Below are positions 3,356 through 47,904 of a DNA stretch of 50,967 nucleotides, piece after piece. Origin of the DNA: Geosiphon pyriformis uo1 (taxonomy: Eukaryota; Fungi; Glomeromycota). A program made the position numbers and the translations under genes. The notes below the pieces were generated by a model, which did not search any database, was not told where the DNA came from, and saw only the letters and a list, made by a program, of their open reading frames with translations. The DNA is taken from positions 1 through 50,967 of the forward strand of contig JAAOMT010000393.1 in NCBI GenBank assembly GCA_016748015.1, given 5' to 3'. Position 1 is the stretch's first letter. Every line of letters starts with the position of its first letter.

Positions 3356-3518
3356 GCTATATAATATGTCGATTTTATTATTGATTATTGACTAATTCAA
3401 ATTTATACAAAAGATATACATATGTATATTTAATAAAATTTGTTTATAATATTTATTTTATCATATTATTTACTTATTAAAACAAAATCAATTATTGTTA
3501 TTATTATTATTAATAAAA

Positions 3519-3589
3519 AAAAACTTCTTTCTCTCTTTTGTCCAAAATTTCCAAAAAAGAGTCTAAAGTTTTTTCTGAAAGAAGTTTTT
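3519..3589 (+). promoter_or_regulatory. 5' UTR terminal inverted repeat or hairpin of copy 1
   Basis: aaaaacttctttc (3519-3531) pairs with gaaagaagttttt (3577-3589). The same motif is at the 5' ends of copies 2, 5, 6 and 9. Confidence 0.6.
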
Positions 3590-3657
3590 CCACAATTTAG
3601 TATGATAAATCTAAACTCTTTATTCTTAAGGCCACTATTGGCTGTAGTATTGCTGTC

Positions 3658-5453
3658 ATAAAGAAGACTGCTAAAGTTTCTGTTTCTGATGATGGCTTCA
3701 GACCTGTTCTTCCAAAGAAAAAGAAAAGAGAAGATATTTTGGAGAATGGTTCTGGTGGTGAAAATGTTGGTTCTAAGATTCAAAGTAGTCACTTATGGGA
3801 TTCAGAGACTGGTGACACCACTAAGTCTAATAGTGTTAATATAGAAGAGGAATGTCTGGTAGAGGAAACCAGTTTTGATTATGGTGAGAATGGTGCTTTT
3901 GCTGGTGAAGATCCTAATCTAACACCTACTGGTTCAAAAATTAAAACAAAGAAGGTGTTGGGCAAACCATTGGGTAAGATTAATTTTTCAGTAAGTAAAG
4001 AAGAAAATAATGTTCTCCTGGATGTTTCTTTGAAACTCCCTCTATTTCTCATGAATCTGGTCAACATTTCTACTTGCAAATTCTTTGTTTCGGATATTGG
4101 GTTTGACAAAGTGGTTGGAAAGTCTTCTCAGGAAAAGCTTGCAATAATTAAGAAGTTGTTTTCACAAATCAATGGTTTTGGGGGGGCCTCTACCTCTTCA
4201 AAATTTGCTGGGATCATCAAAGCAACATTTACTTCTGAATTGAGTTTGGCACAGGCTTCAAAAAAGGCTGAAAAAGCAAAGATCTTGGTAAACACCAATC
4301 TCAAAAAATCATCTGAACATTCAAATCGGACTGTAGTGTTGAAGGAAATTCTAATTAGGACATCAACGGAGGCTGTACGTGCTGTGCTATCCAAGTTCAA
4401 ATTAATTAAGTCAATCAAAATGCAGTTGGTGGGGCTGTGGCAAAAAGTGGTGGTTGAATTTAAACAGGTTGATTATGCTAATTTGATTGCAGCTAAATGG
4501 TCTATCCTAATTGGGAAAGACACAATGCATGTTACTAGATCTGATGTGGACAAAGAATTATGGGACACATGAGATGTTTACAAAGCTCTTTTATACACTC
4601 TGTCAATGGTAACCAATACACATAATATTTGGGATTATGTTACTTCAGTGAGTGAAAAAACTTGTGTAATTGATTATCACCTGGTTTTTTATGCTTGAGC
4701 CAGATGTACTACTGTTTGTTTTGATTTTGCTGAGTTATTGGATGCTGTTTTGAAGACCATGCCTGTTCTAAAAAAGGCCAATTTGTATTGGTTTCATCTT
4801 GTTTCAGCCAAGTGTGCTGGGTATGGGAAATTGGGCCATACATTATTGGTTTGCCCTATTGGTGAGAAAAAAAATGTTTCTTTTAGTGCTTTATCACAGA
4901 AACCTCTCTCGAACTCAGATAAAAATAGACTGGCTGCCATATATGTCAAATGCTTGGCCCAGTTGCTTGTCCTGTTTCTTTTGGTGATGTCTTATAGGCT
5001 CAAATTGCTGGTAAGTCTTCTTTCCCTCCTCTTTCTGCTCAGAATGTTTTGTTGAAAGCTGGCTTTTCTTCAGAGGTAAAGCCTACCCCACTGGTATCTT
5101 TGGAATTAAATGATAGGTTTATTGTTCTTAAGCACAGTCTTACTAGCCTTACAGAACATGTTAACATACTGGCTAAAAGATTGGATGCACTTGAGCCAAC
5201 AGTTTCTCAGCTTAGCCTTAGATGTCAGCTGTTGGTGATCTCTTCATCACAGAATTAAGGGGCAAATATAGTGATAAGTAAAAGTTCAGGTGTGGCCATT
5301 GGTAGTGAGACTGTTGCAGAAGTGGTGGTTTTTGATTCTGCAGTTATTTCGAAAATGGAAGAAACATTAAACAATCTTTCAATCACAGTTATGAGCCTTT
5401 CAGCTAAAATGAACAATGCTAATTTGGTTTCTACCCCTTTTTTTTCTTAATAA
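3658..5453 (+). pseudogene. LINE ORF1 (gag-like; RRM-like + CCHC knuckle + coiled coil), disrupted
   Basis: Contains FSQINGFGGASTSSKF, VVLKEI...KSIKMQLVGLWQKVVVEF and the knuckle CAG(Y)GKLGHTLLVC. The start appears decayed to ATA, and there are stops and frameshifts. Confidence 0.85.
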
Positions 5454-8400
5454 GTAATATGATCTGGAAAGTTGCAATTTGTAATGTTAGAGAAATGAAC
5501 AATCCTGCTAAACAGGATGATATCATTTGTTGGCATAAGGAAAAAAACAATTTAGTTTCTATTTTTTTGGAATTAAAGTTGAAAGGAAAAGCTCGCTCCT
5601 AGATTGTCTACAAATTTGATGGCGTGCAGGTGTTTACCTCTGGTTTAGAATCTGGTTATCTGATTGTTAATGTTGTGGTTGTTATGAACTCTTCTTTAGC
5701 AAGATATGTGTGCAAAATTTCAGAAGTGCCTGGTTGGCTCTTGTCTATCAAGTTGTTTTTCAAAAATAGACTTTCAGTGTCAATTTTGGGGCTTTATGCT
5801 GGTGCCTCATTGGTGGCCAGGTTTTCTCATGCTGACAATATCAACTCTCTTATTGCAAAGACTGTTAATGAATCTTTTTTCATCATTCTCAGAGGTGATT
5901 TTAATGAAGATGGTTTTCATAAGTGTGCAAGTTTCAAAAAATGCCTGAATTTTGGTTTAGTTAATGCCTTGAATAGGAGCTCTTATGAGAAATCACCAAC
6001 TTGGTTCAATTTTTGTTGTGTTGCTAAGATAATTAATTATGTGCTCATTTCTTTGAACTTGGTCAATGCAGTAGTGGATTATGGCATGTTTGGTATTGAG
6101 GAGTATTTTGATACTAATCATCAGATCATCTCAATATTAGTGGGTTTGGGTGGTTTGCTTGATGTTCGATTAAATTCTGTTTGTAAACAAGCAAATAAGG
6201 CTCATTGAAAGTACAATTGCAAAGGTATAGATAATATTAAATGGGCCAAGTTTAAGAATAATATGGTGGCAAATACTGCTATATTATATGACAATTTTTT
6301 TGCAACCAGAATGCACTTGAACTTGGATGTGATATGGATTGCTCTCTATGAAGTATTATGTCTGTCTGCTGAGGCAGTTTTTAAGAAAAAATGGTTCAAG
6401 GACTATGATCACATTTTTGTTAAGGAATCATCCAGGTTTCACAAGCTGGAGCTTTTAGTGTCAAAATTAGTTAAGATGTCTTGTTTGGATTTTTTTGAAG
6501 AATTTGCATTCTTGCTTGACAAGTGAGAGAGTTTGGATTTAGTTAATGCCTCTGTGGTGAAGTCTCTTTTTATGTCAGGTTTTTCCTTTGATGCCATTCA
6601 GTCAGTTTTGGCCAAAGTTAGAAAGTTATATCACTTCTCCAAAATGTCAGAAGCAAAACATGTCAAGAAATCTGGAATCAGATCAGCAATAGATAAAAGG
6701 ATAGAAAGTTTTAAATTAAACAAAGGTCATACTATTAGGAGTGTGCTTTTACAGAGTAATTCTGGATCATCTGGTCATGGATGATGAATTGGTTTTGGAG
6801 CCTAATCTGGTTAAAACCAAGATAGATGTGATTATAAAAGAATGGACTAGAAAATGCAATGTGGTTTCTGTTGTCCCTGATGTGTGATGTCACCAATACC
6901 AGCCTTTGGAGTATGTTTTTGATGATGCCTTTTCTGATGTGATGTGCTAAATTGACTTTGATGAGATGTCTGGTGTCATTTCAAATCTGCCTGATGGGAA
7001 AGCGGCTGGTCTTTTTAGTATCTCAAATAAGTTATAGAAACATTGTAACAGGTTAGTTTTAGATATGCTTTTGGTGCTTTTGAACTTTTGCTTGAACTGT
7101 GAATCTGTTTCTGGGCCTTGGAAGAAGGCTTGGGTGTTGATGATCTCCAAACCATATGAGTAGAAGAGTGTTTTCATGAACACCTGTCTTATTGCTTTGA
7201 TTGAAATGGCTTGCAAAATTCTTTCTAAGATTTTTTCGGACAGAATCTCTTTTGTATGCAGTAAGTTTGATGTTTTTAAAGAGGATAATTTTTCTGTTCT
7301 AAAAGGTATGACCACACAGTTTCCTATTTTTGCTATTGAGTTAGTCATTAAAGATGCTTTGGAGAAGAACCATGAGTTTTGGCTGGTATTGCAGGACATG
7401 CAGAAGGCTTATGATTCTGTTGGCTGGGAGCACCTTAGAGAGAGTTTAGTCAGGATAAAGATGTGTGACAATTTTATTTGGTTTTTTGGTGGCATTCACA
7501 ATAGTTGAATCAACAGAGTTATGATGAATTTTGGGCTGACCAATAGATATATGGTGCATAATGGTTTGGATCAAGGAGAGGTGTTTTTTCTTTTTCTTTG
7601 ATACATATTTTATGATCCTCTTTTGTGTGAAGTCAAGAGACAAGAAAGTGTGTATAGATACAAGTTGGATTTTTGTTTCATGACCAAGACTGGTTGTTCT
7701 GAATCTCAGACTGGTTTGACTTCTTTTTTTGCTGCAGGTGCTTTTGTTGATGCCACTATTTGAATTGGTAGCAATCAGACTGCTATGCAACATATTCTCA
7801 ATGTTGCTAGTGAATTTTTTCGGATCAATAACATTTCAATTAATAATAACAAAATGGTAGCCATTTCTATTAATTGTAGAGTTTCTGAGCCTCGTTTGCA
7901 AATCAGTGGTTTGCCTATTTTGATTGCCAAAAAAGAGAAGTCTCATCAGTATTTGGAGATTTTTCTGTCTATTGAAGGTTTATTAAAGTCTAGCTTGGCT
8001 AGGGCTCATCTGGATGTTCAGTTTTTCACCAATTTCATGCTGAAGAAGACTGTCTCTGACAAACAGTTTTCATATTTGGTGTTGGCAGTTCTTTACTCTA
8101 TTGTTGCATACAGGATTCAGTTCAGTTTTGTTTCTATTAACATGTGTGTGAAGTGGGACACTATAATTTACAAGGGTTTAAAATCTAAATCTGGCTTACC
8201 ACATGACTTTCCCAATGATGCTATCCACTATTTCTCTCTGTATGGTTTGAAGTCTTTTGAACAGATTCAGGCTGAAGGCAAGTCAGCTTTTGTTGTTAGT
8301 TTCACCAATTCTGTTAGTATCTTGGGCTGTTTGTTTGCACATATATCATATAACTTGCAGATTCTTAATTGGCAGTCCTTATCATCTTCTGCTTTTCTCT

Positions 8401-10128
8401 TCCTGTATTAATATTAATCCTTCAAATAATTTTTTGGCTGGCATTGTCTGGATTTTTTTGGAGTGTGACCTTTCTCTGGATGGTCTTGTAACCAATGCTT
8501 TTTGTTTTCCAAATAGTACTCCTATGTCTGTCATTCTTGGTGAACTCATCTTTTATAAATGTGTCTTTTCACTTCGGCATTATAGAATTGTCTTTGTTGA
8601 GCAGCTTCGCAGTTATACTGGTTCTATTTTCAATTAGAGGACCTTCAAGTAATGGAAAAGATTGAACCCTCGAAATTTGGTTCCTCATTGGTTTGATGTT
8701 TCTGTTTGCTTTCTGAATAATTCTGGGCTATCTTCTGTCTGTAATCTTCTGTTGCCAAAAGTTGGTTTGTCTAACATTCTTAAGTCTTATAAGTTTGAGG
8801 TCATATGTGGTCATCTGTTGGGAGTTAATTCAGGTCATCTCTCTTTGTTTATGGATGGTTCTCTAAGTGGGCTGGGTACTCTTGGTATGAAAGCTGGTGC
8901 TGCTGTTTTTTTTGAGAACATTGATTTGGGTTTGGGTGTAGAGGTGTTTGGATTGGTTTCTTCTACTATAGTGGAGTTGTAGACTATTGCTTTAGCTTTT
9001 AAGTATGTTTTTTCTTCTTATTCAGTCAACTTGTTTTTGAACAGCCAGGCTGCTTTGGATGTGTGCAAATTGGAATCCATGTTGACTTGTCTGGATTTCA
9101 GAAATCAGTGTTGGATCGAGTGTTGTCACATTGCTAATGTCATTTAATGCAAAAATTTGGATATTAATTGGATTAAGATTAAGGGTCACTTTGGCGTTTT
9201 GGACAATGAGTGCACTGATGCTCTTGCTGGTGCTGCTGTAGTCTCTGGTATGCATTTTCCTTACATGATTAATGAATATTTTCTTAAGGCTGGTGGTACT
9301 GCAGTGTTCAGTAATTCTAGGCATTTTGTTTGTGGTGTTTTCTAATCTGTTCACCATATGCACTAGAAGGTCGGTTCTGGTTTCTGGGTCTTAGTAGATA
9401 GACTGGGTGCTAATGTTGATTAGTCTAAATCTTCTTTGGTATGGCATCTGAACTTTCATTTGGCTGCTGGTTTCACTAGTGTTTGGACTGCTGGTTTTCA
9501 AACATATTTTATAAAGGCATTGCATCATCGTTTTCTGATTGCTGTGTGTAAATGTCTTTATAATAGGAGTTACTCCAGTGTATTATGTCTATTTTGTGAC
9601 AATGTTGAGGTCTCAGACCATGTATTTTCTTGCTCATTTAATGCTGCTGGTCATGCTTAGTTGGTGGAAGTTCACGCATCTGCTTGGGAGGCACAGTCGG
9701 GTTTATCTCATTTTTTTTCATGTGTTTCACAATTGCTTTTTACTTACATCTCTGATGTTGGTGTTAGTACAGCTCTGTGTAAGAGCTTTGTTTTCAAGGA
9801 ATGGTATCATGAATCTGTTGCTGTTTTTAAGGACTCTAAGATAGCGGCTTAAAATATCGTGGCCTCTGTACATGAGTTTTGTTTTGTGTTTCATGAGGAT
9901 ATTTGGCTGGTGTGTGTTAAGCACTGGACTGTAATAGAGAAGGATGGCTTGATACTGTGTAATGGTTCTGTTCCTGTTTCTATTTCTGGTCTTTTTTTGG
10001 TGCTTTTGGCCAGTGTGATTAGATTGTTAAGTATTGTGGATGCATTTGGTATTGGTTTTGGATTTTGTAAGTCTTGTTTATTCTTTTCAGGTTTAGGTAA
10101 TATGGTTTCAGTACATATAAGTGTTTAG
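5450..10128 (+). pseudogene. LINE ORF2 (APE endonuclease - RT - RNase H - CCHC), disrupted
   Basis: APE: WKVAICNVR, GDFNE, DTNH. RT: LQDMQKAYDSV, GLDQGEVF, AFVDAT. RNase H: FMDGSL, SSTIVEL, KIKGHFGVLDNECTD. Zn finger: CLFC..E.SDHVFSC. Confidence 0.92.
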
Positions 10129-10245
10129 TGTTGTCTTGACTGGCCTGAGTGGCTGGTCACATGTAGAAAATACATGATTTACACCTAGTTTAGATCACTT
10201 GTTTGATGTATTGTACTAGATAATGTTTGGACTTCACTCATTAAA
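10129..10245 (+). other. Conserved structured 3' UTR RNA element (copy 1)
   Basis: P1 gactggcc/ggctggtc with loop tgagt, P2 catgta/tacatg, P3 cctagt/actaga with an inner stem. The terminal cactca is complementary to tgagtg. Confidence 0.8.
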
Positions 10246-10810
10246 TAAATAAAAAAATTTATTAATATAATAAGTAATAATAAAAATAAAAATTTTGTTA
10301 TTAAAAAATATTTAAAGATTTAATATAAAAAAATTTTTGGATTTAATAATACTTAAGTATATTTATTATATTATAAGTATAAATAAAATAAAAAAAATAT
10401 TTTAATTAATTCAGAAATTTTTACTATAACAAATAATTATTAACAGTTAATAAACCAGATAACAATTATATTATAAAGTTTTTTATTATTAATATTAATA
10501 ATAATTATTACAAAAAATAAAATAATTTTCTAGTTAGATTAACAATTTAACTTATTAAATTATTTTGTTAATTAACTTGCAATTTTTTTAAATATTTTGT
10601 TTTTTTATGATATTTTTTATTATAATATATGTTATTTAATAGAAAGTTTTTAAATAATATTATAAAAATTTACTAGTACTTATAAATTTATAAAAAATAA
10701 TTTATATACACATTTAAAATTATATATTTATCTATTTTTTTTTGTTTATTTAAACTTATTAAAATAATTTTATAATTTATTCTAAAAACTTGTTTATTTT
10801 TTATTAAGCA

Positions 10811-10928
10811 TTTAATGAGTAAAGCTTAACCACTATCTAGTACACAGAGCCAAACTAAGTGGCCCAAACTAAATGCAATTCATGTATCAACAACATGTGA
10901 CTAGCCACTCAGACCAATCAAGGCATCA
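10811..10928 (-). other. Conserved structured 3' UTR RNA element (copy 2)
   Basis: The sense strand reads gattggtc tgagt ggctagtc, catgt/acatg, tttagt..gggcca/tggctc..actaga, then tactcattaaa. Confidence 0.8.
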
Positions 10929-13900
10929 CTATACACTAATATTAATATGAGGTTTACCATCCAGACCCGAAAAAAAAAGACAAGGCCTAAGATGACCAAA
11001 ACTGACAGCAAAAGACTCGGCAATACCAAGCATTCTTACCACACCATTGAAAAGCACAGAAGACACACAATGAGACAGACCCGACAGTAAACCATTATTA
11101 CCAACCAAGCCAGCCTTCTCCATGTTTGCCCTGAACCTAGATCTAACCAACCAGATCCTAGATTGATGCAACTCAGCCAAAAACTTCATAAAGTCAATCA
11201 CAACACGGGAAGCCTTATTAATATTATCGAAAACACTTGCCGTCTCAGTACACCAAACCTTTATCACAAAACTTTTACACAAAACCAATTATCTGCCAAT
11301 GTTCAAATGACAAGAATCAAGGACCTGAAGAACAGAAGAAGAGGATAGGTCACAGACACCAACCAAAAAAGTCCACTGTGCAGAAGCCTCCAGCAAAATC
11401 TCCCTCCAGATATAGACATCCTGAGAACAAGTGAAAACATGGTTTGGCAGCTCTATCTCACTACACAATAAACACTGAACACCTGGGTAACATCTGTTAT
11501 ACAGTCTCTTTCTGACCACCACTGGCAACCTCTTATGTAATGCCTTTATCAAATATGTACAAAGATCCGCTGACTTGTAACTAGTAAACCCAGCAAGCAT
11601 GTATAAGTCAAGATGCCAGACCTTTACAGAAGCAGCCCAATCAAAATTCCCTAACATGTTAGCTGAAACCACATCCCGACCAAGACCAGTCTCCCAACGA
11701 GCACAACAAATAGACCTGAACACATTCCTGACAAAGTAGTGGGCATTGCCTAAAACTACCATGTCATTAGCCACCAAAAAATGCTTCCGTATCCTCATTG
11801 GCAAAACAAAAGAGGAGCAAATAGTCTCACCAGCAAATCTATTGGCTTCAACATTGCCAAGAACACCAGCATGACCTTTGACTTTGACCCAACTCACCCT
11901 AAGATCCTTATCTCTAATTAAATTGAAAACATGCCTCCTTTTGACCCAGCAGCAACTGTGGAAATTTGGAACCCCAAGCAACAACTCAGAAACGCACGCA
12001 TTGATAGCAGCTTGGCTGTCAAGATACAACACCACAGAACTAGATGAGAAAACACATTCCAAAGCCAGAGCAACAGCCTGCAACTCCACTATAGTAGAGG
12101 ACAAAAAGCCACAAACTTTGACTCCAACACCCAATTTCAGAGCTGGAAAATACGCAGTCACACCACTCGACACATCAGCAGACCCAGCCCCCTTCAAAAA
12201 CCCATCCGTATATGCCTCAAAACAGCCAGACCAAATCCCATGTAAACTATCCTGCACGGAGGAGAAAATATTAGACTCCAAAATATTCAAACTACCAGAT
12301 TGGACGGCAACAGATGGGTGAAAAGAAGAAAGACCCTGATTCAAAAAGTACTTAAAAGCAACTATGAACCAAAGAGGCACAAAGCCTTATGGATCCAAAC
12401 GCTTCCAATGATGAAATGTCTTCCAATCCAACAACAACCCCTTTTTGTCAAAAAGCTAATCACTGAAAGCAACACCAAAATACTTAAGAGAATGAACAGA
12501 ATCAAAGTACAAAGACTTCCCAAGAATTGATAGCATCGGAAAACAACCAAGATAATGGAAAGCATTGGGAAGATTGTTTACCAAAGAAAGATCAATATTC
12601 ATAAAAATCTTTATCACACCTGCTAAAAAATTGTTTACTGGACTAACATGCAACTTGACAGGGTACTGAAACAGATTCAAAAGGGGCCCAACTCAAAACC
12701 TGTAAATCCAAAAACCTATGCTCAAACAAGCAGCCAAGAATACCGGGTGCATTAGCAAATGACACCAAAAAAGCCATCTTCCCCTCAGACTGCACCTGCT
12801 TAAAGGATTTCAAACCATACAGAAAAAGATGATGCAGAGCAGCATCAGAAAAATCATGAGGTAGACGTGCCTTAGATTTGAAGCCCTTCCTAACTAAAAC
12901 ATCCCACTTGCGGCAAACACCAGATGAAAAAAAACTAAACTGCATACAGTAACTAATAATGGGCTGCAAAACAGCCGACACTAAATATGAAAACTGCTTA
13001 TCTGTAATTGTCTTCTTGAGCACCCTGTTGACAAAAAAACAAATATCTGAGTGAGCCTTGGCCAAACTCAGTTTAGACAACCCTTCAGTTGACAAAAAAA
13101 TCCCCAAATATCTGTGAGCTTTGCTCTTTCTGACAACAGAAATCAGCCGACCACTTATATTCAATACTGCAACTTTAACACTCTGATTAATAGGTATTGC
13201 CACTGTTTTCTCATTGTTTATGGAAATATCATTAATATAAAAGAACTCACTAGCAATATTTAAAGCATATTGCATGGAAGCTTGACAATCTCCAACCCAA
13301 ATTGTATCGTCCACAAAAATGCCAGCAGTAAAAAATGAAGACATCCCACCACCATTCTCAATTTTGCCAGTCCTTGCCACAAACTTAGTATCAATATAAT
13401 AACCACACAAATGTTCATGCCTTTTAACTTTACACAAAAGTGGGTTATAAAAGATTCTCCAAAGGAGAGGCGAGAAGACTTCACCCTGATCAAGGCCATC
13501 ATGCACCCTATAACCATTCGAAAGACCAAAATCAGTCATCATCCTATTAACTCTGTTCTCATGAATGCTACCAAAAAAGTCAATAAACCTACCACACATT
13601 TTGATATGCTGCAGACTAGCTCTTAAATGGTGCCAACCAACAGAATCGTATGCTTTGTGCATATCCTGTAAAACTAACCAAAGTTCCTTATTTTTCTTAA
13701 AAGCATCCTCAACCACCGATCCAACAGCAAACACAGGAGATTGTATTGACGTACCCTTTAATACTGAGAAATTGTCACCATGGAGAATGCCAAATCTACT
13801 GCACACAAAAGAAATCCTATCTGAAAGATAGAGAGAATCTTTCTGGCCATCTCTATCAAAGCAATGGAGCAAGTGTTTGTCAGAACTCTATCCCAATCAT

Positions 13901-15616
13901 AAGACTTAGGGATCATTGAGACCCAGGCCCTCTTCCATAAAGCAAGTACAGAACCAACAAACAAACACATATTCAACAAAACCAAGAGACACTCCATTAC
14001 TTCCTCATCACTCTACTTCCAAAGTCCGTTAAAAATGCCAGACAAACCAGCAGCCTTGCCATCAGGCAAACCACCAACAACCAAAAGCAATTCATCCAAA
14101 GTAATAGCATTCATAACATCAGAAAAAGCATCATCTTTAACATGAGCCAAAGGAGCATACTGATGGGCCCAGAGATCAGGCAGTACTGAAAGCACTATCT
14201 GCTTCCTTGTCCAAACCTCCATGATACTGTTAACCTTCAATTTTACCTTCTCAGGCTCCAAAACAAGCTCATCATCAATGACTAAATGATCTAACACAAC
14301 CTTTCAAAAGGGCTGATCCAAGACACTTCTGATTATGCTACCCTTGTCAGAACAAAACTTTCCCATGCACTTTTTAATAGTTTCCTTGATAGAAACCTTC
14401 TGTGCCAAAGTCGATTCATACAATTTGGACTTTCTGTACTTTTTTTTGATGACTGACAAGAACTTAAGAATGGCAACCTTCCCCTAACCCAATTGAACCA
14501 TATTCATCAACATGAGAGCCTTGTCAGCATCCAATGTAGACCATTTCTTTACAAGACGATTAAAACCAAAGACATCAGCCAAGCCAAACTTTTTAACAAT
14601 TTTGACAATTAGCAACTTCAAGCCCAGAAACTTGGAGGATTGTTTATTTTTCAAACACTGAAATTCATTGAACCAACACCAAGAAAAGATTTCATCCACA
14701 GAATCCACTAATATCTTTTCCAGCAGAAACCACATAGCATCCAAATTTTGCTCAGCAGCAGCAGCAAGAAAATCATCTTTTATGCTCAAAACCATGGCAG
14801 AAAAGCAATCCCTGAAACAAGACAATCCAGTAACATCCACATCCTTGATATTAAACTTCCAGTGATCTCTGTTAGCCTGCTTGTGCAAGCTATTCAAATG
14901 GACATCCAAGAGCCTGCCCAAACCAACAGAGACCATAACAGCATTGTGATCAGTGTCGAAAAAGTCTAAAACTGGGCCAATCTTATGGCCAGCCACAGTA
15001 GAAGCCAAATTTTCACTAACAAAAATGAAATCAATAGTCCTTTCAACCCTCCTAGAATTACCCCATGTAGTAGCCCAACCAAAGGATGACCAGAAAACAA
15101 ATTAACCAAACCCAAACTCAAGCAGAACCTAAGGCTTGCACTCCTTCCAGACCCATTTTTGTTGAAGTTTCCACCCAAAACAACAAAGGTGCTGGAGTTA
15201 ACAGCCTTTGCAATAAGAGAATTTACCTCAGAAGCCTGACCAAAACGAACACCAGTGGAAACACCAGCATACAAACCAATAACAGAAACCAAAAGTTTAT
15301 TCTTAAACAGAAGCCATATAGTGACAAAATGGCCAGGAACTTCCTCAACCTTAGAGACATGACGAGCCAAAGACTTGTTTATGATAACAGCAATACCAGC
15401 ACCATGAAAACCAATGTCCAATCCAGAAGTGAAGATACGGACACCTTCATATTTATCCTTAATCTATAGACCAACAGAGGATCTTAATTTTGTTTCAGTT
15501 AAAAAAGAGATTGTAGAGCCAGAATCCACGTGCCAATGGAGAACATCTACTTGCTTAGCAGGAACATTGAGACCCCATACATTACATGTAGCAAAATTCT
15601 AAACCAGGTCACTCAT
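10929..15616 (-). pseudogene. LINE ORF2 (APE-RT-RNase H-CCHC), disrupted
   Basis: Contains LGGNFN, FDTDH, LQDMHKAYDSV, GLDQGEVFSPLLWRIFY, IFVDDTIW, YTDG, LDSQAA, KVKGHAGVLGNVEAN and CLLCSEIELPNHVFTC. Confidence 0.93.
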
Positions 15617-17502
15617 TAGATTAAAGGGGGTAAGAACGAACCCAAACCAGAACACAAAATATCTAATCTTGCCAGGATCAAACCGAATGAAGCTTCCAGA
15701 GCAGACAATTTGGATTCCAAACCACTTACCTTAGAGATAAGCACTTTAGAACCACTCGAACTAAAACCAGCAGCAGGCTCATCACCACCAGAAAGAGGGG
15801 GGACGGATGGAGCCAACACATCATCCAGAGCCATATCTGAATCTGCAACCAGAGCCGAAAGCACTAAACCAGCCACAGAAGGAGCATGAGAAGTGGACAC
15901 CAAAGGCATCAGATCAACAAAACTCAATTTCTTAAGAATAATAGAAACTTGATCTGAAAGAATTTCTAAGGAACACTCCAGAACCGCCAAATGATTATCC
16001 AAACCATTGATTTAAGGACCAGAAGAACCAAAAGAGAGAGGCTTATCACTAGAGAACAAACCAGAACCAGAAGAGAAGTCACCAGAAGGGGAGGCAAGAG
16101 ACACCACTTGAGCCCACAATTTTCCACCAAAGGCAGCAGGGCAAAAGATAGAAACATTTTTTTTCGCATACAACCTGGCCAACTGGAGATGATCAAAACC
16201 AGAAGCAGACTTCTTAAATGTATTTGGGAGGCCAGAAAATAACACAACAGATGCATCACACTCCAGAATAGAATGGCCAAAACACCCACACTTCCCACAC
16301 CAAACCAAATCCAATCTAGCCCATAAGAAACACACCCCACTGAAAATAGGCTCAGTAAGAAAAGCAGATTCCAACTCCTTATTAGATTCAAAGCCAATTA
16401 CAGCACAACGAGATCTATTGCCAGTTTCCAATAAACAATTGATGATGCAAGTTTTTCCACCAGCTTTTTCCAAAAGAGTGCCAAGATCATGTGCAGTTGT
16501 TTCCACCAACAAAGTAAACAACAGTGCTCTAAACTGATCTCTAGAAGCCCATGAATCACGATCTCCCACGGCCATAGCCACACAAACTGAATCTTTCCCA
16601 ATTAGGAACGACCATCTTAAAGCCAATTGCACAGCCTGATCTGATTTGGCAAACTCCACCACTGCTTTTTGCCACATGCCAATCAGTTGAATTTTGATTG
16701 ACCTAATTTCACCAAACTCGGCTACTGTGGCGATGATCATTTTTTTAAGTGTGTCCATGGAAATTTCTTTGATCACCACAGCTTGATCTGAACACACTCC
16801 TTGTTTCTTGAGATCAATGTTTACAATGATGTTGTTATCCCTAGCCAATGAGGTGGCCTTTTCCATGTTTGCTTCAGAGGTAAAGATAGATCTAATGATT
16901 TCTTCAAATTTTGAAGGGGTAATGGCCCCCCCAAAACCATTGATTTTTGAAAAAAGTTTCCTGATCAACTGGGTCTTTAATGTAGCTGATTTTCTTTCCA
17001 CAGCTGAGAGATTAATATCCAGAGCAAAAGACTTCTTAACAGCCACTTCCATAGGAGTTTTAACTATCTTAGAATCAACCCAAATTCTATCCAAAGGAAT
17101 CTTTTTCATGAGTGGGGCCAGGAGGGGCTTTACCTCTTCATCCATTTCAAAGTCGAGAGAACCAATAGGAGAACCAAAATTTGCACCAGTATTAACCCTT
17201 TTAGCTTTGGGGGTGTTAACAGCTGAATCCAAGAGGGAGCCATCAAAACTACCAAACATACTAACATTTTCATCATCACCAGATAGACTATTCGCATCAG
17301 AAAATGAACCAGTACCAGAACCAGACTTCAGAGATATATCTTTCTCATCACCAGAGTGTTTAACATTGCCAAGAATTTTCTTTTTCTTCTGAAAGAAAGA
17401 ACCACCAACAGGACCATGAAAAACACCCTTAGGCATCCTCTTTTTAGACATGTTGCCACCTGAAGCAACCTCCAAATCTACAATGAAAGGGTTATTAGAC
17501 AA
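15613..17502 (-). pseudogene. LINE ORF1, largely open (496 aa stretch plus frameshifted C-terminus)
   Basis: Contains KKSFALDINLSAV, FSKINGFGGAITPSKF, IKIQLIGMWQKAVVEF and the knuckle CGKCGCFGHSILEC. The C-terminus is heptad-like (KVSGLESKLSALE). Confidence 0.88.
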
Positions 17503-17848
17503 AGAAATATTGATAAAGTATTAACAAGAAAAATAAAAAAAACTTCTTTTTCAAAAAAGTACTTGTTGGAGTTTTTTGGATGTAAGAGAGAAAGAAGTTT
17601 TTTTTTTCTTGTTTATTAAAAATATTAATATTTAAATTATTTAAGTTATCAAATTCTATTATTTTAAATTTTAAATTTTTAATAACATTAAATAATACAA
17701 TTAATAAGTTTATTTTAGTAAGTTAAAAAATAAAGTTGTTTATATATATTTAATTTTATATATATTTTTAATTAATTATAAATATTAAGCAAAATAATAA
17801 TTAAAAAATAAATATATTTTTTTTTAAACTCTTTGTCTTTTTAATTTT

Positions 17849-20845
17849 ATGACCATAACCAGAACAAACAGTAAAAAAGCTGTACCTGATATCTTTCTTG
17901 AAATATCTAATAAAATTTCAACCAGAAAAGCTCTCTTTATTATAGAAGCAACTAGACAAAACGTTTTAGAAGTCTTCTTTTTACTCAGTAATCATGAAAA
18001 GCTGTCTTTAGTAGCCACTGAAGCAATTTTTTCTTTTTTGGCTGGTTTTTTATCAGTCAAAGTTTCCTTAAAGAAACACACTTGGGTTAATCCCAGTGTT
18101 GTCTCCACTCTTACTAAGGGCCCAAAAGTATTTAATAATAGACTAGTTAACAAGCTGATATTTCTTTCCATAGTTTTAATGTCTGGTGTTTTTAACACTT
18201 TTTTTTCAAAAAAAATGATCAAAAAAACCAAAAGTTCAGAAAAATAAGGGCAGTTGCTTGTCTTTGCTATTATTACATTGAACCCCTTTGTGGTTTTAAA
18301 TAAGATTTTGAATAAAATTTCTGTTGTATTATTTGGCACATTATCTAAGATAGGCCAAGATTAACTACTGGCTGTATTGCCAAATGTAATGTCTTTTGGT
18401 GGATCATTGCCAGTTTTAAAAGCAAAGCAATCATTTCCTGTGGTGTTACCTGTTCTTGAGAACTGGACTGACTAAATAGAAACTAAAGCATCTCCTCCTC
18501 TGGTTTTTGGTGCTACCATTGGTGGTGCTTGAGAAATTATTACTAATTGTTAAAGGTTTACTAGATGGGTGGCCTCTACTCTGGTGCCTAATGCTACTTT
18601 TAAAATTAAATTGGCTCATGTTAAGACTGTTTTTTAATTAGTACATAGTTTTTTGAATGTAAAGTTGGTATCAAAAGACAATGTAAAGCTGTTTTGTGTG
18701 AAGTTTGCTTCTCAAGTGTCTTTGGAAGCTGCATTTTTGGTTAAGCTTACAAGCTCTATACATTTGGCTATTCTTAAAATTACCAAGTCTTTGGTAGTTT
18801 CTGAATCTGGTTCTCTTTTTGCTACTGTTATGCTGCATGATATGCTCTTGAGTGTGTCTGCTGCTAATATTAAGACAGTTCTTAGTGTATTTGGTAATAT
18901 TACTTATATTGTGCTGAAGTCTGCTAGCATTTAACAGTATGTGGTAGTTTATTTTGAGAAGTTGGATTCTGTTGTATCTGTTTTGAATCATTAGTCAGTT
19001 TTGGTGGACAAAGATAGTGTTAAAATTCTCCTCTTGGTAAATCAAAATAAGACTATTTTGTTTCATAATAAATTTAAGACCAAATTAATCAATCTTCTTT
19101 CTGGATACACAGCTTTTGAAATTAGTGATATGATTTCTCAAGTTGGTGGTTGGTGTTACTCATAAAATATAAAAATTATAGTAGTATATATATTAGTCAA
19201 TTAAAAGTAGATATAGTAAAATATGGAATTCCAAAATTTCTTTCAGTGGAATTACAGAATTCCAGAAATTACAAGATTCTTATACAAGAAATTACAGGAT
19301 TCGAAAATTCCTGGATTCCTCTCAAAAAATTGCAGAATTCTAGAAATTTTAAGATTTTTGACAAGAAAAATGAAAAAATTGAGGAATCTTAAATATATAT
19401 ATATAGCAGTAGTATTAAAAATAGAAAAAACAGATCTCACAATTAGATTTAATCTAAGCAATCTTCTAATTTACAAATATTAATAAATAATTATTTGTTA
19501 TTTCAATTCACTTTTCACTATTAATACTTCATGTTGATAGTAACTGATATTTAACAACACTAGAACAATAGTTCTTGATCACAGCTATTGATAAGATATT
19601 AATATTTATTGCCTTGGCTTATTTTTTATTTTTTTTTATTTTTATTTTTTATTTTTTGTATTTTATTTTTTGTATTTGTTTTATTTAATTACTAATTTGA
19701 TTAAAAGGATTAACATATAAAAGTACTGATGTTAGGATATAAATAACTAGTAAAAGACCCAGGAATAAAGATAAAACACTCGATTGAGGATAGCTTACCA
19801 GAAAGATTACCAGCCATCATACTGAAAAAAAAATTGACAGAATTGTGGTTTCAAGAAGCTATAGATAAAACAATTAGTAAATCTCTATCTATTATACAAA
19901 AAATTCAAACAAAACCTTCAGATTACAAAATCTTCAAATATTACCAACTAGATCAACTATTGAGCACCAAATTACAGATTTGTTATTTAAATTCAACACC
20001 CAAATAATAATCTATAATATTGAACATATTTTATCTCTTATTTATTTGAGTTTGGTCGTCATTTCTAGTTTGCTTTGGTTATATTTGGTTCTCAAACTGA
20101 TTTAGATTCTGTTATTGTCAAAATTAGTACACTGAGGAAATGTTGTATTTGGTAGAAAACTCCTGGTTGTCAGTATTGTTTCAAATGTTAAGAGCTAAGC
20201 CATCTGGCTGTGGACTATAAGGTTTTTCCATCTCTTCCTCTCAAGTTTTTTAAGGTATTTACACCATACTTTGTTGGTCCTAAGTCTTATGCCAAGGCTT
20301 TTGCTTTCTTGAACTCCTCTGGATTTTTACTTCTGTTATTTCTTGCCTCTTTTCCAGTTGTTGTTGGTAATCTTTTGGTGCTGTTCCAATTGTCTTCTTT
20401 GAAATCTGATTTAACTAAGCTTTCTGCTTTGGTTGAGTCTATTGTTAAGTCTATTGATTCTTTGGTTATAATTTTTAAATAGTTTATTAATAGTAATTTA
20501 GTTTTAAGTAGTGCTTTTGGTTTTAGGATCAATGAAGTTTTGGTGCATATGAATTCTTTTAGTAGGACTGTTGATAAGCTGGGAAGAGAGATAATCTTTT
20601 TGAAAAAAGAGTGCTGCATAAAAAATATTGATATGTCTGGTGATTTGGAATATCTAATTGGTGTAAATAATAATACATTTTCTAACTTGATGTTTCTTTG
20701 GACTTATGAACCAATTCATATCAAAACTAATTCCTTGAAAACAGTTGAATGGCTAATTGGATTGATTTCTAATAGTATTACTTTGTTTAGTATTGTTCAG
20801 AAAATGTCTTCTTTGGGTAAGTTTTCTTTTAAGACTTCAACATAG
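17849..20845 (+). pseudogene. Divergent ORF1-like protein (long S/T/K-rich N-terminus, RRM-like segments, CCHC, extended helical C-terminus), disrupted
   Basis: Segments homologous to family ORF1 include SVLVDKDSVKI (compare WSFLIGKDSV), TAFEISDMISQVGG (compare TAHDLGTLLEKAGG) and knuckle remnant CFKC..LSHLAVDY at about 20177-20218. Confidence 0.75.
19154..20019 (+). mobile_element. Internally deleted LTR retrotransposon remnant (5' LTR about 19154-19556, short internal part, 3' LTR tip)
   Basis: TGTTA...TAACA bounds 19154-19556. Inside are repeated gaattc/aattaca motifs, a TATA run near 19394 and AATAAA at 19482. tttgttattt(c/a)aattca occurs at both about 19494 and 19979. The 4-bp flanks are ttgg and ttga, and the host ORF1 rejoins across the insert. 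Confidence 0.65.
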
Positions 20846-20962
20846 TATATTCTTAATTAGTCTGAATGACTAGTTATGTGTAGAAAACACATAATTAGCA
20901 TTTAGTTTAGATCACTTAGTTTGATGTATTGTGCTAGGTAGCTTTTGGGCTGTACTCATTAA
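20846..20962 (+). other. Conserved structured 3' UTR RNA element (copy 3)
   Basis: aattagtc tgaat gactagtt; tatgtgt/acacata; agc-a-tttagt/gctagg-t-a-gct; tactcattaa. Confidence 0.8.
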
Positions 20963-21014
20963 GCAATAAATAAATAAAAATAAAAAAAATAAATAATATA
21001 AAAAATATAATTTT

Positions 21015-21108: not shown

Positions 21109-21139
21109 TTTTTTTTTTTATTATGTTTAATGAGTAAGG
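21109..21139 (-). other. Displaced 3' terminus and poly(A) tail of copy 5
   Basis: The reverse complement ccttactcattaaacataataaaaaaaaaaa matches family 3' ends. The copy 7 tail is also ttaaacataataaaaa. Confidence 0.7.
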
Positions 21140-21277
21140 AAAAAGAAAAAACTTTTGGTCTTGTCGATCTCCTAACCATGATGAAAGCATAGATATTTTT
21201 GAAGTATTCGCTTTTCTTCCTTCTTTTTCCCTTAGTCCCTGTTAGCTATTTCTTCTACTACATCTCTGTTTGTCACA

Positions 21278-23221
21278 ATGGAACCAGTAAGCTCTTTTGC
21301 TGGTGGCTTTGGGTTGATTTCGGCTGGTTTGGGGATCCACCAAAGTGTGAAAAGCAAGCATGTAGATACAATATACTTTCAAGGTGCATCCTACAAAAAG
21401 CCAAAGAAGCCTGTTACTGGTGTTGTAGTTGACTTGTCTGCTGGCCCTCTGGGCTTGGAAAATTTTGGTAGTGCTGGCATCAAGCCTGGGTTATCTTAGA
21501 GAAGTGAAGTTGGCAGTGTCACTAGCAGTGTAAGTAATCTCTTAGACATCAAAAATATGGTAAATACAATTGCCGAGAGAACCAATTATGTGGAATCAGG
21601 TAAAGACAAAAACATAGATGAGATGATGCCAAGAAAGACTCGCACTTGGATGTTTGTGCTGGACAATCCTCTGAAGCGGCCTTCATTTGAACGTATAAGT
21701 AATGACAATGTTGTGCTAGATCTTCCTTCTTGTGTGAATATTGAGTCCAATCAGTCGCCGCCACTCAGATCACGTGCCCTGGAAATACAGAACTTTGATA
21801 TGACAAAATCCTTCGCACTTAATATTGAGCTTTCTGCAGTGCCTGGCAAATTAGTTAGTGATAAATTAATTTCATTAAAAAAAATTTTTTATCATGTTAA
21901 TAGTTTTGGAAGAGCCTCTACTCCCTCAAAATTTCCTGATATCATTAGATCATCCTTTACATCAGAATTTAGTTTGAATAAGACTAGGGAAATGGCAATC
22001 TGTGAAAATATTTTGGTTAATGATGATGTCAAAAAAGCAAACAGCCATTCAGATTGGAAGGTGATTGTCAAAGAGATCCCAATAGATCTTCCCAGATCAG
22101 CAGTGGAATTAGTTTTCTCTAAATTTGGCAAGATTGTGTCTATCAAGATGCAGCTAATTGGTCTTTGGCAAAAGGTCCTAGTTGAATTTAAGTTGTCTGA
22201 AGTTGCCAGTCAGGTCGCTTCTATGTGGTCTGTTTTTATGGGAAAAAATTCTGTGCATGTGGCTTTGGCAATCAATAATAAATAAATGTGGGTATCTAGG
22301 GATCAGCATTGGACATTGCTATACACTCTACCAGTGGGCACTACTGCCTATGATCTTTTTGATTTGTTGGTATCCTATGGTGGGAAGTCTTGTTTTATCG
22401 GCCACAATCTTAGTTCATATGTTTATGATAGGTGTGCTGTAATTTGTTTTGGTGATGAAACATCCAAGTTGGCTGCTATTGGCACAGTTCCTATTTTCAA
22501 GGGTGCAAATTTGCATTGGGCTGGTCTCTTTCTGGCCTGTTGTAGTTGGTGCAAACAATTTGGTCATATTTCTGTTAACTGTTTGATGGGTGGGAATTCT
22601 GGTGGTTGTGGAAGGTGGGTGGTTTCTGATTAGGATCGAGTTTGTTTGGCCAGAATATATAAGAAAAAAATGGCTCCTATTGCATGGCCTGTTTTATTTG
22701 GTGGTAAGACATGGGCTCAGATTGCCGGTGGCTCTTCTTCTCATATGGTTCTTTTGGATGCTTTTGGTGTTAGTTCAACCTCAAGCGTGAACTCTCTCTC
22801 AATGTTCTTTGGGTCCCTCGATGTCTCTGATTTAGGCAGTCATTTGGCGTCTTTGGAATGCTCCTTGGAACTCTTAGCTGACCAGGTTTCTGGCATTATG
22901 AAAAGATTGAGTTTTGTTGAGTTGGTGCTCTTGGTGCCTTTCTCTTGTGCTTCCCCTCCAAATGTTTCTGTGCCTGTGATTTCAGTTGTGGAATCAAATA
23001 TGGCTCTGAATGGTGAGTTGACTTTGTCTACACCCTCTGTTTCTGGTGCTGATGTGTCTGATGCTGTTCTTAGTTCGAATGGTTCGAAGGTTCTTACCTC
23101 TAAGATGAGTGGTTTGGAATCTAAGATGTCTGCTCTGGAAGCTTTAATTGGTTCAGTTCTGGTGAGATTGGATTTCTTGTGTTCTAGTTCTGGTTCCCAT
23201 GCTCCTTTTTTGTCCCAATGA
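21278..23221 (+). pseudogene. LINE ORF1, disrupted by a few stops
   Basis: Starts MEPVSSFAGG. Contains KSFALNIELSAVPGK, SIKMQLIGLWQKVLVEF and CSWCKQFGHISVNC, and ends FLSQ-TGA. Confidence 0.88.
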
Positions 23222-26200
23222 GTAATCTGGTTTGGAAATTTGCAATGTGTAATGTTCAGGATATCAATATTCCTGCGAAGCAAGCAGACGTTGTTTGCTG
23301 GCATGTGGGTTCTGGGAATATGGTTTCTTTTGTTACTGAAACAAAGTTGAGGTCCTCTGCTGGGCCATAGATCAAGGATAAATTTGATGGAGTTCGGATT
23401 TTTATTTCTGGTTTGGATGTTGGTTATCTTAGTACTGGTGTTGCTGTGATTATGAACAATTCTTTGGCTTGCCATGTTTCTAAGATTGAAGAGATCTCTG
23501 GTCGAGTTGTTTCTGTGTGACTCTTGTTCAAAGGCAAGCTCTTGGTAACTGTGCTTGGTTTGTACACTGGTGCTTCTTCTGGCACTTGTTTTGGTCAAGC
23601 GTCTAAGATTAATTCTTTCATTGCTAAGGTTGTCAATACTAGCACCTTCATTGTGTTGGGTGGAGATTTTAATGAGAATGGATCTGGAAGGAGCATGAGT
23701 TTTAAGTTTTGCTTGGGTCTGGGTCTGGTCAATTTTTTTGCTGGTCATCATTTGGCTGGGACACCTACATGGTGCAATTCAAGAGGGATTGAGAAGACTA
23801 TTGATTACATTTTTGTTAGTGAAAATCTGTCTTCTGCTGTTGCTAAGCATTGGATTGGACCTGTTTCTGAATTTTTTGATACAAATCACAGTTCTGTCAT
23901 GGTGTCGGTTGGTCTGGGTGGACTTTTGAATGCTCAGTTGAATAGTTTGCACAAACAGGCTAACAAGGATTGTTGAAAGTTCAGAATTAGGGATGCGGAT
24001 ATTGCCAAATGGAGTAAGTTTAAGGATTGTGTTTTGGATAAACTTCTGCTGGTCAAGGACTTTTTTTTTGAGGCTGAAGCTAGTGGTGATCTAGATACTA
24101 TGTGGGCGATTTTGGAGAGGGGGATGGTTGATTTGGCTGATAAGGTGTTCGCGAGGCATTGGTTTAGTGAGTTTCAGTGCCCTAGAAATAAACATTTTTC
24201 AAAATTTTTTGGGCTTGAGCTACTCATTGCTAAGATTGTTAGTAAAATTGGTTCTGGTGACATGCTTGGGGTAGATCATCTTGTGAGAAAATGGTTCACT
24301 TTGGACAAGGCCAAGGCTAGTGCTTTTTCTGACTTGGTCATCTTGGGTGGGGACAGTGTTGTTCTTCTCAAGCATTTGTCATTGGTTCACAAAGAATATA
24401 GAAGGTCGAAAATGTTTGAGTCAAGGTTGGCTGAGGAGACTTCCATTAGGAAAGCTATTGAAAAGCACATAGAGAGCTTTGCTTCTAGTAAGAGTGGCAT
24501 AATCCGAAGCATTTTGGACTGGTCTTTTCATAAGGTGGTCCTTGATTATTTGGTAATTAATAATGACTTGGTTTTGGAACCTGAGGAGATAAAGTCTAAG
24601 GTTGACAAGATCATGATGGGGTGGACGAGAGTTCGCACTATACTTCAATTGTTGTCTGAACGCTGAGTTCGCCAGTATATGCTATTGGATTATGTAAGGG
24701 ATGATGTCTTTTCCAGTGTTATGAGGGAGATAGATATGAAGGAGTTGCTTTTGGTGGTGGGTGGTCTGCCTGATAGTAAGGCTGCTGGCCTGTCTGGTAT
24801 TCCCAATGAACTGTAGAAGCATGGTAATGAGGTGGTTCTGAGCTGTCTGTTGGTTTTGCTGAATGCTTGCTTGTCCGTTGGCAGGGTGCCTGTTTCTTGG
24901 AAAAGGGCCTGGGTGTCAATGATTCCTAAGCCATATGATTGGGATGGTGTTTTCATGAAAACTCATCCCATTGCTCTAATTGAAACTGCCAGGAAGATTT
25001 TCTCTAAGGTTCTGTTTGATCGGATTTCTTTCATATGTAGTAAGTTTAGTGTTCTCCATGGTGACAATTTCTCTGTGTTAAAGAGCATATTTATGCAATC
25101 TCTGATGTTTGCTGTTGGGGCAGTTGTGGAAGATGCTCTTGAAAAGAATAGGGAACTTTGGCTGGTCCTGCAAGACATGCGAAAAGCATATGATTTTGTT
25201 GAGTGGCATTATTTAAGGGCTAGTTTGCAGAAGATTAAGATGTGCAACAAATTTATCAGATTTTTTGGTAGTATACATGAGGGTAGGTTCAACAGGGTGA
25301 TGACTGATTTTGGTCTTTCTGATGAGTATCATGTTTGTGATGGTTTGGATCAGGGTGAAGTTTTCTCACCCCTTTTGTGGAGGATTTTTTATGATCTACT
25401 TTTGTGTAAAGTTAAAAGACATGAACAGATTTTTGGGTATCGGATAAGTTCCAAGTTTGTTTCGAAGTCAGGTTGAATTGAGGGTGGTGGTGGGTTGTCA
25501 TCTTATTTCACAGCTGGTGCTTTTGTTAATGATACAATTTGGGTTGGGAACTGTCAAGCTGCTACTCAGAATATTTTGGACATTGTGAGTGAGTTTTTTG
25601 TTATCAATGACATTTCTATCAACAATGAGAAAACTGTGGCCATTCCGATCAATCAAGGTGTTAGAATTGCTTCTTTGAATATTAATGGTCTGCCTGTTTC
25701 AATAGCTAAAAAGAGTATAGCTCATTGCTATCTGGGTATTTTTTTGTCCACTAAGAGGCTTTCAAAGCTGAATGTGGCCAAGGCACATTCTGATGTTCAT
25801 TTCTTTGCTAATGTGGTTCTCAGGAAGGCTATTACTAATAAACAGTTCTCATATCTGGTATCGGCCATCTTGCAGCCTATTGTTAGCTATCGTACTCAGT
25901 TCAGCTTTGTCTTATCAAATGTATGTAACAAATGGGATGTGATATTGAAGAAGAGCCTTAAGTCTAAAGCTGGTTTGTCTTGTGATTTCTCCAATGAGGC
26001 TCTGTGTTATCCATCTTTATATAGTCTGAAGTTTTTTGAGCAGGTGCAATCTAAGGGAAAGTTGGCTGCCTTGATTTCATTTTCCAACTCTTCTGGTATT
26101 CTTGGCCAGTTGTTTGAGCACAGGCTTCTCAATTTGCAGGTTCTAGGGTGGTCTCCTTTGAATCCTTTGCAGTTTTCTGTTAAGTTGCGTGTTAGCCCCA

Positions 26201-27909: not shown

Positions 27910-28027
27910 TGTTGTCTTGTCTGGCCTAAATGGCTAGCCACATGTAGAAAGTGCATAAACTGCATTTAGTTTGAGCCTCTTAATTTGGTTCTATGTACTA
28001 GATAGTGGTTGGACTCCACTCATTAAA
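27910..28027 (+). other. Conserved structured 3' UTR RNA element (copy 4)
   Basis: ctggcc taaat ggctag; catgta gaaag tgcata; aactgca-tttagt..gagcc/ggttc..actagat-a-gtggtt; ggactccactcattaaa. Confidence 0.75.
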
Positions 28028-28038
28028 CTTATTAATAA

Positions 28039-28153
28039 TTTAATAAGTGAGGTCCAAACATCACCTAGTATAATACATCATAAGAGATCTAAACTAGGCA
28101 TGAATCATGTATTTTTTACACGTGACCAGCCACTCAGGCTGATCAGAACAACA
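28039..28153 (-). other. Conserved structured 3' UTR RNA element (copy 5)
   Basis: The sense strand reads gatcagcc tgagt ggctggtc, cgtgta/tacatg, cctagt/actagg, then ggacctcacttattaaa. Confidence 0.8.
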
Positions 28154-34744: not shown

Positions 34745-34902
34745 ATTCACAACAAATGGGTTGTGTATAAAAGAAATAGTGAAATAAAACAGATAGAAAA
34801 AAACAAAAAAAACTTTTTTCAAAAATGTGTTCTTTTTTGGAAATTGGAATGTATGAAAGAAAGAAGTTTTTCCAAATCATTTAATTTAATCAAAATTTTT
34901 TT

Positions 34903-40793: not shown

Positions 40794-40794
40794 T

Positions 40795-40956
40795 TAAAAA
40801 AAAATAAAAAATCTTTAATAATAGTATTTAATCTTTTAACTAACTTATTAATCTGTTTTACAAAGCTGGCAAAACTGTTTTTAATTTTGTTAAATTATTT
40901 TTTCATTCAATTTACAATTATCAAAAAAGGTTTGACTTTGTTTAAAAAACCAAATT
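40795..40956 (-). mobile_element. Relic copy 6, middle piece (ORF1 coiled-coil region)
   Basis: aatcttttaactaacttattaatctgttttacaaagctggcaaaactg aligns to the reverse complement of copy 1 about 5130-5190. Confidence 0.6.
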
Positions 40957-41123
40957 AAAAAAAACATTAGAAAATATTTGAAAGAAAATTAAACAATCTT
41001 TTTTTTGTTGATCCCCTGACCATAACAAAAGCAAAAATTTATTGAGAATTTAACAAACCTTTTTTTTCTTTTCTTATTCATCTTTTCATAGTTATTTCTT
41101 CTAATACATTTGTTTTTGTTATT

Positions 41124-47754: not shown

Positions 47755-47870
47755 TGTTGTTTTGATTGGCCCGAATGGCTGGTTACATGTAGAAAATGCA
47801 TGATTTATGCCTAGTTTAGATCATTTCTTTGATGTATAACACTAGGTAGTGTTTGGATCTCACTTGTAAA
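47755..47870 (+). other. Conserved structured 3' UTR RNA element (copy 8)
   Basis: gattggcc cgaat ggctggtt; catgta gaaaa tgcatg; gcctagt/actaggt; ggatctcacttgtaaa. Confidence 0.8.
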
Positions 47871-47904
47871 GCAAATAAAAAAAACATTAGAAAATATTTG
47901 AAAA

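Follow-up and report, generated by a model that had tools for sequence, protein, structure and literature searches.

A selected, structured 3' UTR in a LINE family of Geosiphon pyriformis and its predicted four-way junction

Stringent-type 3' tails have been described in the LINEs UnaL2, ZfL2-1/2 and SART1, in plant ME1-type L1 elements and, among fungi, in the pairs MGR583/Mg-SINE and Tad1-24_BG/SINE2-1_BG (PMC3747384, PMC4176376). Binding of ORF2 to such 3' tails has been shown for zebrafish L2 (PMC4176376), and recognition of a pseudoknot has been shown for R2 (PMC11601368). In this study, we report an element that constitutes the entire 3' UTR, from the stop codon to the A-rich tail, of a family of APE-RT-RNase H LINEs of Geosiphon pyriformis. 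As in the stringent LINEs, the host is a non-LTR element with APE and RT, its 3' end carries a conserved, compensated structure directly before a simple-repeat or A tail, and a non-autonomous partner shares this structure. The described tails are, however, essentially single stem-loops, whereas a predicted 120-nt four-way junction, stop codon included, fills the Geosiphon UTR, and an ORF1-only element, presumably dependent on ORF2p, takes the place of the SINE partner.

Other described systems share part of this arrangement. The 3' UTR of vertebrate A-clade R2, built of pseudoknot, hinge and stem (PMC11601368), resembles it as a compact, multi-helix 3' RNA of the template with a possible pseudoknot. 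R2 is nevertheless a single-ORF, RLE-encoding and rDNA-specific element, whereas the Geosiphon host is a two-ORF APE element dispersed in AT-rich DNA; binding by the RT protein is established for the R2 3' RNA and is proposed here for that of Geosiphon. The R2 pseudoknot lies 5' of the hinge and terminal stem and has been proven by rescue, while the Geosiphon complementarity shows no decay-independent covariation and has a nested rival. In topology, the flavivirus dumbbell (PMC8266583) comes closest, with a four-way junction, pairing of an arm loop with a downstream strand, and a switch. The dumbbell is viral, however, and the Geosiphon fold has neither sequence similarity nor an Rfam match to it, and its pseudoknot is a candidate. 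The partner element is like HAL1 (half-L1; PMC5753468) in being multi-copy and in carrying an ORF1-like protein only, but it is fungal and keeps a complex structured tail; the likeness to HAL1 is one of content.

The functional class, that of the stringent 3' tail, has long been known; the fold is apparently undescribed. No description of the fold or the family was found in Rfam or in the literature searched, which covers few subscription journals. In Rfam 15 no match reached the gathering score, and those at E=10 were not meaningful, in agreement with the earlier note on this DNA, which could place the element in no known family. Sub-threshold Rfam matches to MIR841 and MIR5070, on a tail-to-tail pair of copies, and to 6A, MIR5291 and PreQ1 were dismissed as products of chance or of inverted copies. 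ARAGORN detected no tRNA in six loci, and the T-loop GTTCRA and 3' CCA expected of a tRNA or tRNA-like structure were absent.

Position of the element and its host LINEs

The DNA analysed is a stretch of 50,967 nt, referred to as the window, and the genome searched was the Geosiphon pyriformis assembly (128 Mb, 792 contigs). Columns are counted from the stop codon (columns 1-3, TAG), and the alignment, A1, holds 40 copies. The aligned loci from beyond the window were picked by UTR similarity, and the window copies serve as the unselected set; all sequences come from one genome, and subfamilies B and C are thinly sampled. The features of the window are as follows.

3520-10128, forward: host LINE of copy 1, decayed ORF1 and then ORF2; 5' end approximate
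10126-10245, forward: copy 1, structured 3' UTR, including the ORF2 stop TAG at 10126-10128
10241-10260, forward: tail of copy 1, TTAAA and A-rich/(TAAA)n
10811-10931, reverse: copy 2, subfamily B; host LINE ~10811-17600 with RRM ORF1, RT and RNase H
20843-20963, forward: copy 3, at the end of an ORF1-only element (~17830-20990) split by a solo LTR (~19155-20022)
27907-28027, forward: copy 4, subfamily B; host LINE ~21140-28040 with APE, RT and RNase H
28039-28156, reverse: copy 5; host LINE ~28039-34870
34908-35028, reverse: copy 6, heavily decayed; host LINE reaches at least 39045
39920-40039, reverse: copy 7, a 5'-truncated insertion of ~216 nt of ORF2 end plus the UTR
47752-47871, forward: copy 8; host LINE ~40985-47875, flanked by a 26-bp target-site duplication

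The ~120-nt element was present at all eight of the sites where the earlier note had placed it. It starts with the stop TAG and ends in CACTC(A/G)T(T)AAA, after which the A-rich tail follows. Covariance-model scores were 108-136 bits in seven window copies and 50 bits in the decayed copy 6. The statement that the element follows a stop codon at every one of these ends fails for copy 6, which reads TTG, and not all eight are ends of ORF2, since copy 3 ends an ORF1-only element and copy 7 is 5'-truncated. Among the 40 aligned copies, TAG is present in 39 and G3 in all. Matches to the 3' pattern put the genome-wide copy number at 1,381 or above (at least 1,381; reversed control, 0), and BLAST of the element against the genome gave 2,090 candidates. 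In all copies the tail begins 0-8 nt past the fixed TTAAA; many carry AATAAA-like repeats, and (TAA)n or (TAAA)n tails are frequent.

The window consists of decayed copies of two-ORF LINEs with A-rich tails at their ends, several of them with target-site duplications. ORF1 contains an RRM and a CX2CX4HX4C knuckle, and ORF2 contains APE, RT and RNase H domains and a CX2CX7HX3C motif; the Pfam matches in the host were Exo_endo_phos, RVT_1, RNase_H and RRM. A first look at the genome with the RT yielded ~6,100 candidates. PDB matches of the RT to human L1 (E 5e-14) and R2 (E 9e-12) were similarly weak and do not discriminate between clades. All close protein matches came from Geosiphon pyriformis itself, and the eight matches from elsewhere, 44-56% identical, were fragments on contigs of <1.4 kb or without a contig. 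Three metagenome loci stop short of the 3' UTR, and the covariance model had no match within them; the viral contigs searched gave no match.

The family of copy 3 (window 17830-20990, forward) has an ORF1-like frame only, of ~710 codons once the solo LTR is set aside, and no ORF2 similarity. It numbers at least 40 copies (588 candidates), nine of which adjoin UTR matches by coordinate. Its ORF1 is weakly similar to that of the autonomous family (E 5e-5 in copy 3; 27% identity in the copy at locus L026), its ORF is also ended by TAG, and its UTR has compensated pairs of its own. The full UTR is likewise kept in 5'-truncated copies with target-site duplications, namely those at L006 (~57 nt upstream), L004 and L025 and copy 7; the 3' end is retained in truncated copies under any TPRT, and these copies are consistent with recognition.

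The target-site duplication of element 8 (approx. 40958-40983 and 47876-47902), at 26 bp, is long for an APE-type LINE. Insertion of element 4, in antisense orientation, interrupted the 3' end of element 5 (21120-21140, 28036-28052) and duplicated ~14 nt of its terminus; the true tail of element 5 is now an orphan at ~21120-21140 of the minus strand. In full-length copies, an inverted repeat at the 5' end (A-run CTTCTTT ... AAAGAAG T-run) forms a long hairpin, at 3515-3600 (forward), 17535-17615 (reverse) and 34810-34885 (reverse). This hairpin, with z-scores of -2.4 and -2.0 and lost in the decayed copy 5, is a possible conserved 5' signal. The solo LTR inside copy 3 (19155-20022, forward) has a TG start and a decayed CA end; related LTR sequence splits LINE copies at L013 and L029, and an LTR-like junction was seen at L019. 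Tail-to-tail copies, 10-600 bp apart, are common (window 27907-28156; L015, L026 and L027). Read-through of such pairs could yield long double-stranded RNA, and the arrangement may merely mirror AT-rich targeting. A 530-bp AT-rich repeat (1052-1583 and 40310-40839), inverted and 76% identical, is unrelated to the LINE.

Selection on the 3' UTR and compensated pairing in its fold

The helices P0, P1, P2 and P3 and a basal helix, Pb, appear in folds of single copies, with z-scores of -1.35 to -4.3 across 12 copies. In copy 1 they are located as follows.

10127-10130, forward: 5' strand of Pb, AGTG, overlapping the stop codon; predicted partner 10235-10238
10133-10136, forward: 5' strand of the closing stem P0; partner 10229-10232; U-A replaced by C-G in copy 2
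10137-10159, forward: P1 hairpin, 10137-10145/10151-10159, with the near-invariant loop (T/C)GAGT(G)
10160-10176, forward: P2 hairpin with an A-rich loop; no decay-independent covariation in the 40-copy alignment
10177-10228, forward: long arm P3; 10177-10182/10223-10228, a bulged A, 10183-10189/10215-10221, and the inner stem 10191-10197/10204-10210
10235-10240, forward: terminal CACTCR, able to pair in Pb or, as a candidate pseudoknot, with the P1 loop 10146-10151

In alignment columns, Pb pairs 2-5/111-114, P0 8-11/105-108, P1 12-20/26-34, P2 35-40/46-51 and the base of P3 52-57/99-104, where A52-U104 is invariant. The helices abut without linker bases between columns 11 and 12, 34 and 35, 51 and 52, and 104 and 105, which corresponds to a perfect four-way junction. 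The GTCY/GGAC closing stem had been expected to produce such a junction, and its pair 9/107 is compensated. Two U-U oppositions in P3 of the A subfamilies become A-U and C-G/U-G in subfamily B. The P1 loop is canonical in 388 of 408 genome matches (reversed-pattern controls, 0). Fixed G-U pairs exceed A-C pairs 9:1 in two well-sampled masters, and the folded strand is therefore the sense RNA and not the cDNA. A divergent variant at L006:1988-2072 (forward) has the same P1, with different and shorter P2 and P3, and its 5' half matches two copies with a G23 loop; its sequence suggests that distant subfamilies with other P2/P3 sequences exist.

Differences between copies are dominated by decay. 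Within subfamilies, C>T and G>A reach 14-25% per site and each transversion ~1% or less, and decay is 31-47% at CpG and 8-24% at non-CpG sites. Across the window, C>T/G>A decay is symmetric in all contexts, which fits methylation-driven decay and not a single RIP dinucleotide. Because post-insertion decay is almost all C>T/G>A, transversions report the evolution of the masters. Among the A subfamilies, transversion distance fell from 0.229 at third codon positions and 0.098 at positions 1+2 to 0.028 in the UTR, so that between subfamilies the UTR is ~8-fold more conserved than third codon positions. The unselected window copies gave a like contrast (UTR, 0.02-0.10; coding, 0.12-0.28). Divergence drops at the stop codon and climbs again only in the P3 loop region. 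Post-insertion decay of the UTR is about equal to or somewhat below the rate elsewhere, and constraint therefore acted mainly on active masters. These results demonstrate purifying selection on the 3' UTR of master elements.

Covariation after discounting C>T and G>A was one of the tests on which the earlier note had let its proposal of a conserved, covarying RNA fold stand or fall, and a selected, structured LINE 3' UTR is supported by it. Counted per lineage, seven double-sided non-decay changes stayed Watson-Crick against 1.5 expected (P=1.4e-4), and pairs were broken 13 times against 23.8 expected (P=3e-4); transversions alone gave two double changes (P=0.03). Six of the seven compensated pairs lie in P3 (55/101 and 63/92, both double transversions, 56/100, 67/85, 69/83 and 70/82), and the seventh, 9/107, lies in P0. 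Related lineages cannot be counted as independent, and the compensations correspond to ~4-5 lineage events, of which the B branch by itself accounts for three or four. Inspection of the alignment partly guided the choice of helices, and single-sequence folds give identical pairs. In P1, the sole covariation is at pair 18/28: of the 46 loop-variant copies, 30 have G18-C28 and 14 have A18-U28, with two discordant (one lineage event; Fisher P=9e-10). Pairing in P3, in P0 and at this P1 pair is demonstrated by these counts.

Single-sequence folds contain all four stems described earlier (P1, P2, P3 and the closing stem), and the two P3 examples, the inner swap ATCA/TGAT versus GCCA/TGGC and the outer AGC/GCT double transversion, proved real. 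The covariation drawn from the other two stems could not be sustained: the P1 differences in the window are all of C>T/G>A type or one-sided, and the P2 comparison of catgta/tacatg with tatgtgt/acacata had mixed two registers, copy 3 differing within a single register only by decay and an opened terminal pair.

Alternative partners of the terminal sequence

A probable pseudoknot between the P1 loop and the tail had also been proposed. The complementarity is present, as the loop (T/C)GAGTG can pair with columns 111-116, but decay-independent covariation of this helix was not found in the 40-copy alignment, and a nested rival had been overlooked, namely AGUG at the stop codon (columns 2-5), which is complementary to the same region and forms Pb. 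The two pairings are mutually exclusive, pair counts cannot separate them, and Pb shows no covariation in the 40-copy alignment either. Pb is present in most minimum-energy folds and adds ~5 kcal/mol in context; the isolated duplex energies are -6.2 for loop and tail and -3.0 for the Pb strands.

Conservation of columns 4-5, which are non-coding, favours Pb. Fixation of TAA in place of TAG is never seen, whereas just 57% of synonymous NAR codons end in G. In the 2x2 loop that separates Pb from P0, there is a tendency for changes to create pairs (P about 0.07), namely A6-U110 in copies 2 and 6 and G7-C109 in family C. The pseudoknot is favoured by the nearly constant P1 loop, by the greater strength of its isolated duplex, by C115, conserved though it has no partner in Pb, and by 21/116, which remains U-G, U-A or C-G. 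The loop change A23>G is carried by 46 copies; no tail with C114 adjoined them, but the general tail pattern, used as positive control, likewise matched 0 of the 4 such copies among the matches listed. In our estimate, Pb probably forms, formation of the loop-tail pseudoknot at some stage is given slightly less than even weight, and it is unlikely that both are functional.

Proposed function and alternative explanations

By analogy with described LINEs, we consider it likely that the UTR acts in cis as the template signal of a stringent-type LINE and is bound by its RT. This reading draws on the position of the UTR, the selection on it, the pairing in P3, P0 and one P1 pair, the sense-strand fold and retention in truncated and ORF1-only elements; for ORF2p binding and the role in TPRT, which we infer, it draws on known LINE biology. 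That an element without RT keeps the tail under selection follows the LINE/SINE tail-sharing logic for stringent recognition (PMC3747384). The 3' UTR of the sense RNA would fold into the perfect four-way junction of P0, P1, P2 and P3, with Pb most likely extending its base and holding the terminal CACU against the region of the stop codon. This fold would be bound by ORF2p (APE-RT-RNase H), probably through the invariant P1 loop and the junction, and the downstream A-rich tail would thereby lie in the RT site as the endonuclease nicks AT-rich DNA and target-primed reverse transcription begins.

The fold could instead serve 3'-end formation or stability, directing cleavage and polyadenylation after TTAAA or shielding the 3' end, with the RT needing the A tail only. 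The constant position of the tail and the AATAAA-like repeats agree with such a role, and ORF1-only RNA would need an element of this kind too. The frequent (TAA)n/(TAAA)n tails are, however, expected from RT slippage, and a near-invariant sequence of 120 nt exceeds the needs of fungal polyadenylation signals; a role confined to 3'-end formation is considered improbable. We are similarly doubtful of a two-state switch, in which the tail CACUCR would alternate between two pairings, Pb and the pseudoknot with the P1 loop: on termination at UAG the ribosome would strip Pb, the pseudoknot would form, and new ORF2p would load in cis. Conservation of both partners (columns 2-5, and loop 22-26 with C115), the identical TAG closing the ORF of the ORF1-only family and the duplex energies given above all speak for a switch, and a junction of four helices is able to keep two arms near each other for a pseudoknot of this kind (PMC8266583). 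Yet neither short helix covaries, and protein contact explains the conservation equally well. If the switch were real, termination of ORF2 would license RT loading on the same RNA, which would be a structural basis of cis preference in a stringent LINE.

Two further explanations carry very little weight. The four-way junction is the natural scaffold of the hairpin ribozyme, and a compact, highly conserved and perfect junction could belong to a new class of self-cleaving ribozyme that cuts the 3' end of read-through transcripts. None of the Rfam models of known self-cleaving ribozymes (hammerhead, hairpin, HDV-like, twister and others) matched, even at E=10, and the core motifs of hammerhead and hairpin are absent, AGAA lying in a terminal loop and not in an internal loop opposite GUC; catalysis, already called unsupported in the earlier note, is still so. 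The copies, moreover, end past the fold and not inside it, and the ribozymes of R2, L1Tc and similar elements are reported at the 5' ends of their elements; a ribozyme is highly improbable. An artefact was also considered, in which copies would be alike through recent exchange of 3' ends or gene conversion and deamination would mimic pairing, since most differences between copies are C>T/G>A and the retrieved loci were chosen by UTR similarity. The contrast is, however, repeated in the unselected window copies, conservation starts at the stop codon, and the double transversions at 55/101 and 63/92, the fold z-scores and the empty reversed-pattern controls all argue against an artefact. This reading, to which we give hardly any probability, is already largely refuted by the decay-discounted counts of pair changes.

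Among structured template signals, those of R2 and the L2-type stem-loops are the main ones solved so far. As a template signal, a four-way junction spanning the whole 3' UTR of a fungal APE-LINE, including the stop codon, would widen the modes by which RTs are known to select templates. It would also offer a compact test system, guided by natural variants, for cis preference and for the trans mobilisation of ORF1-only partners, and the fold is a precise marker of a repeat family of >1,000 copies in Geosiphon.
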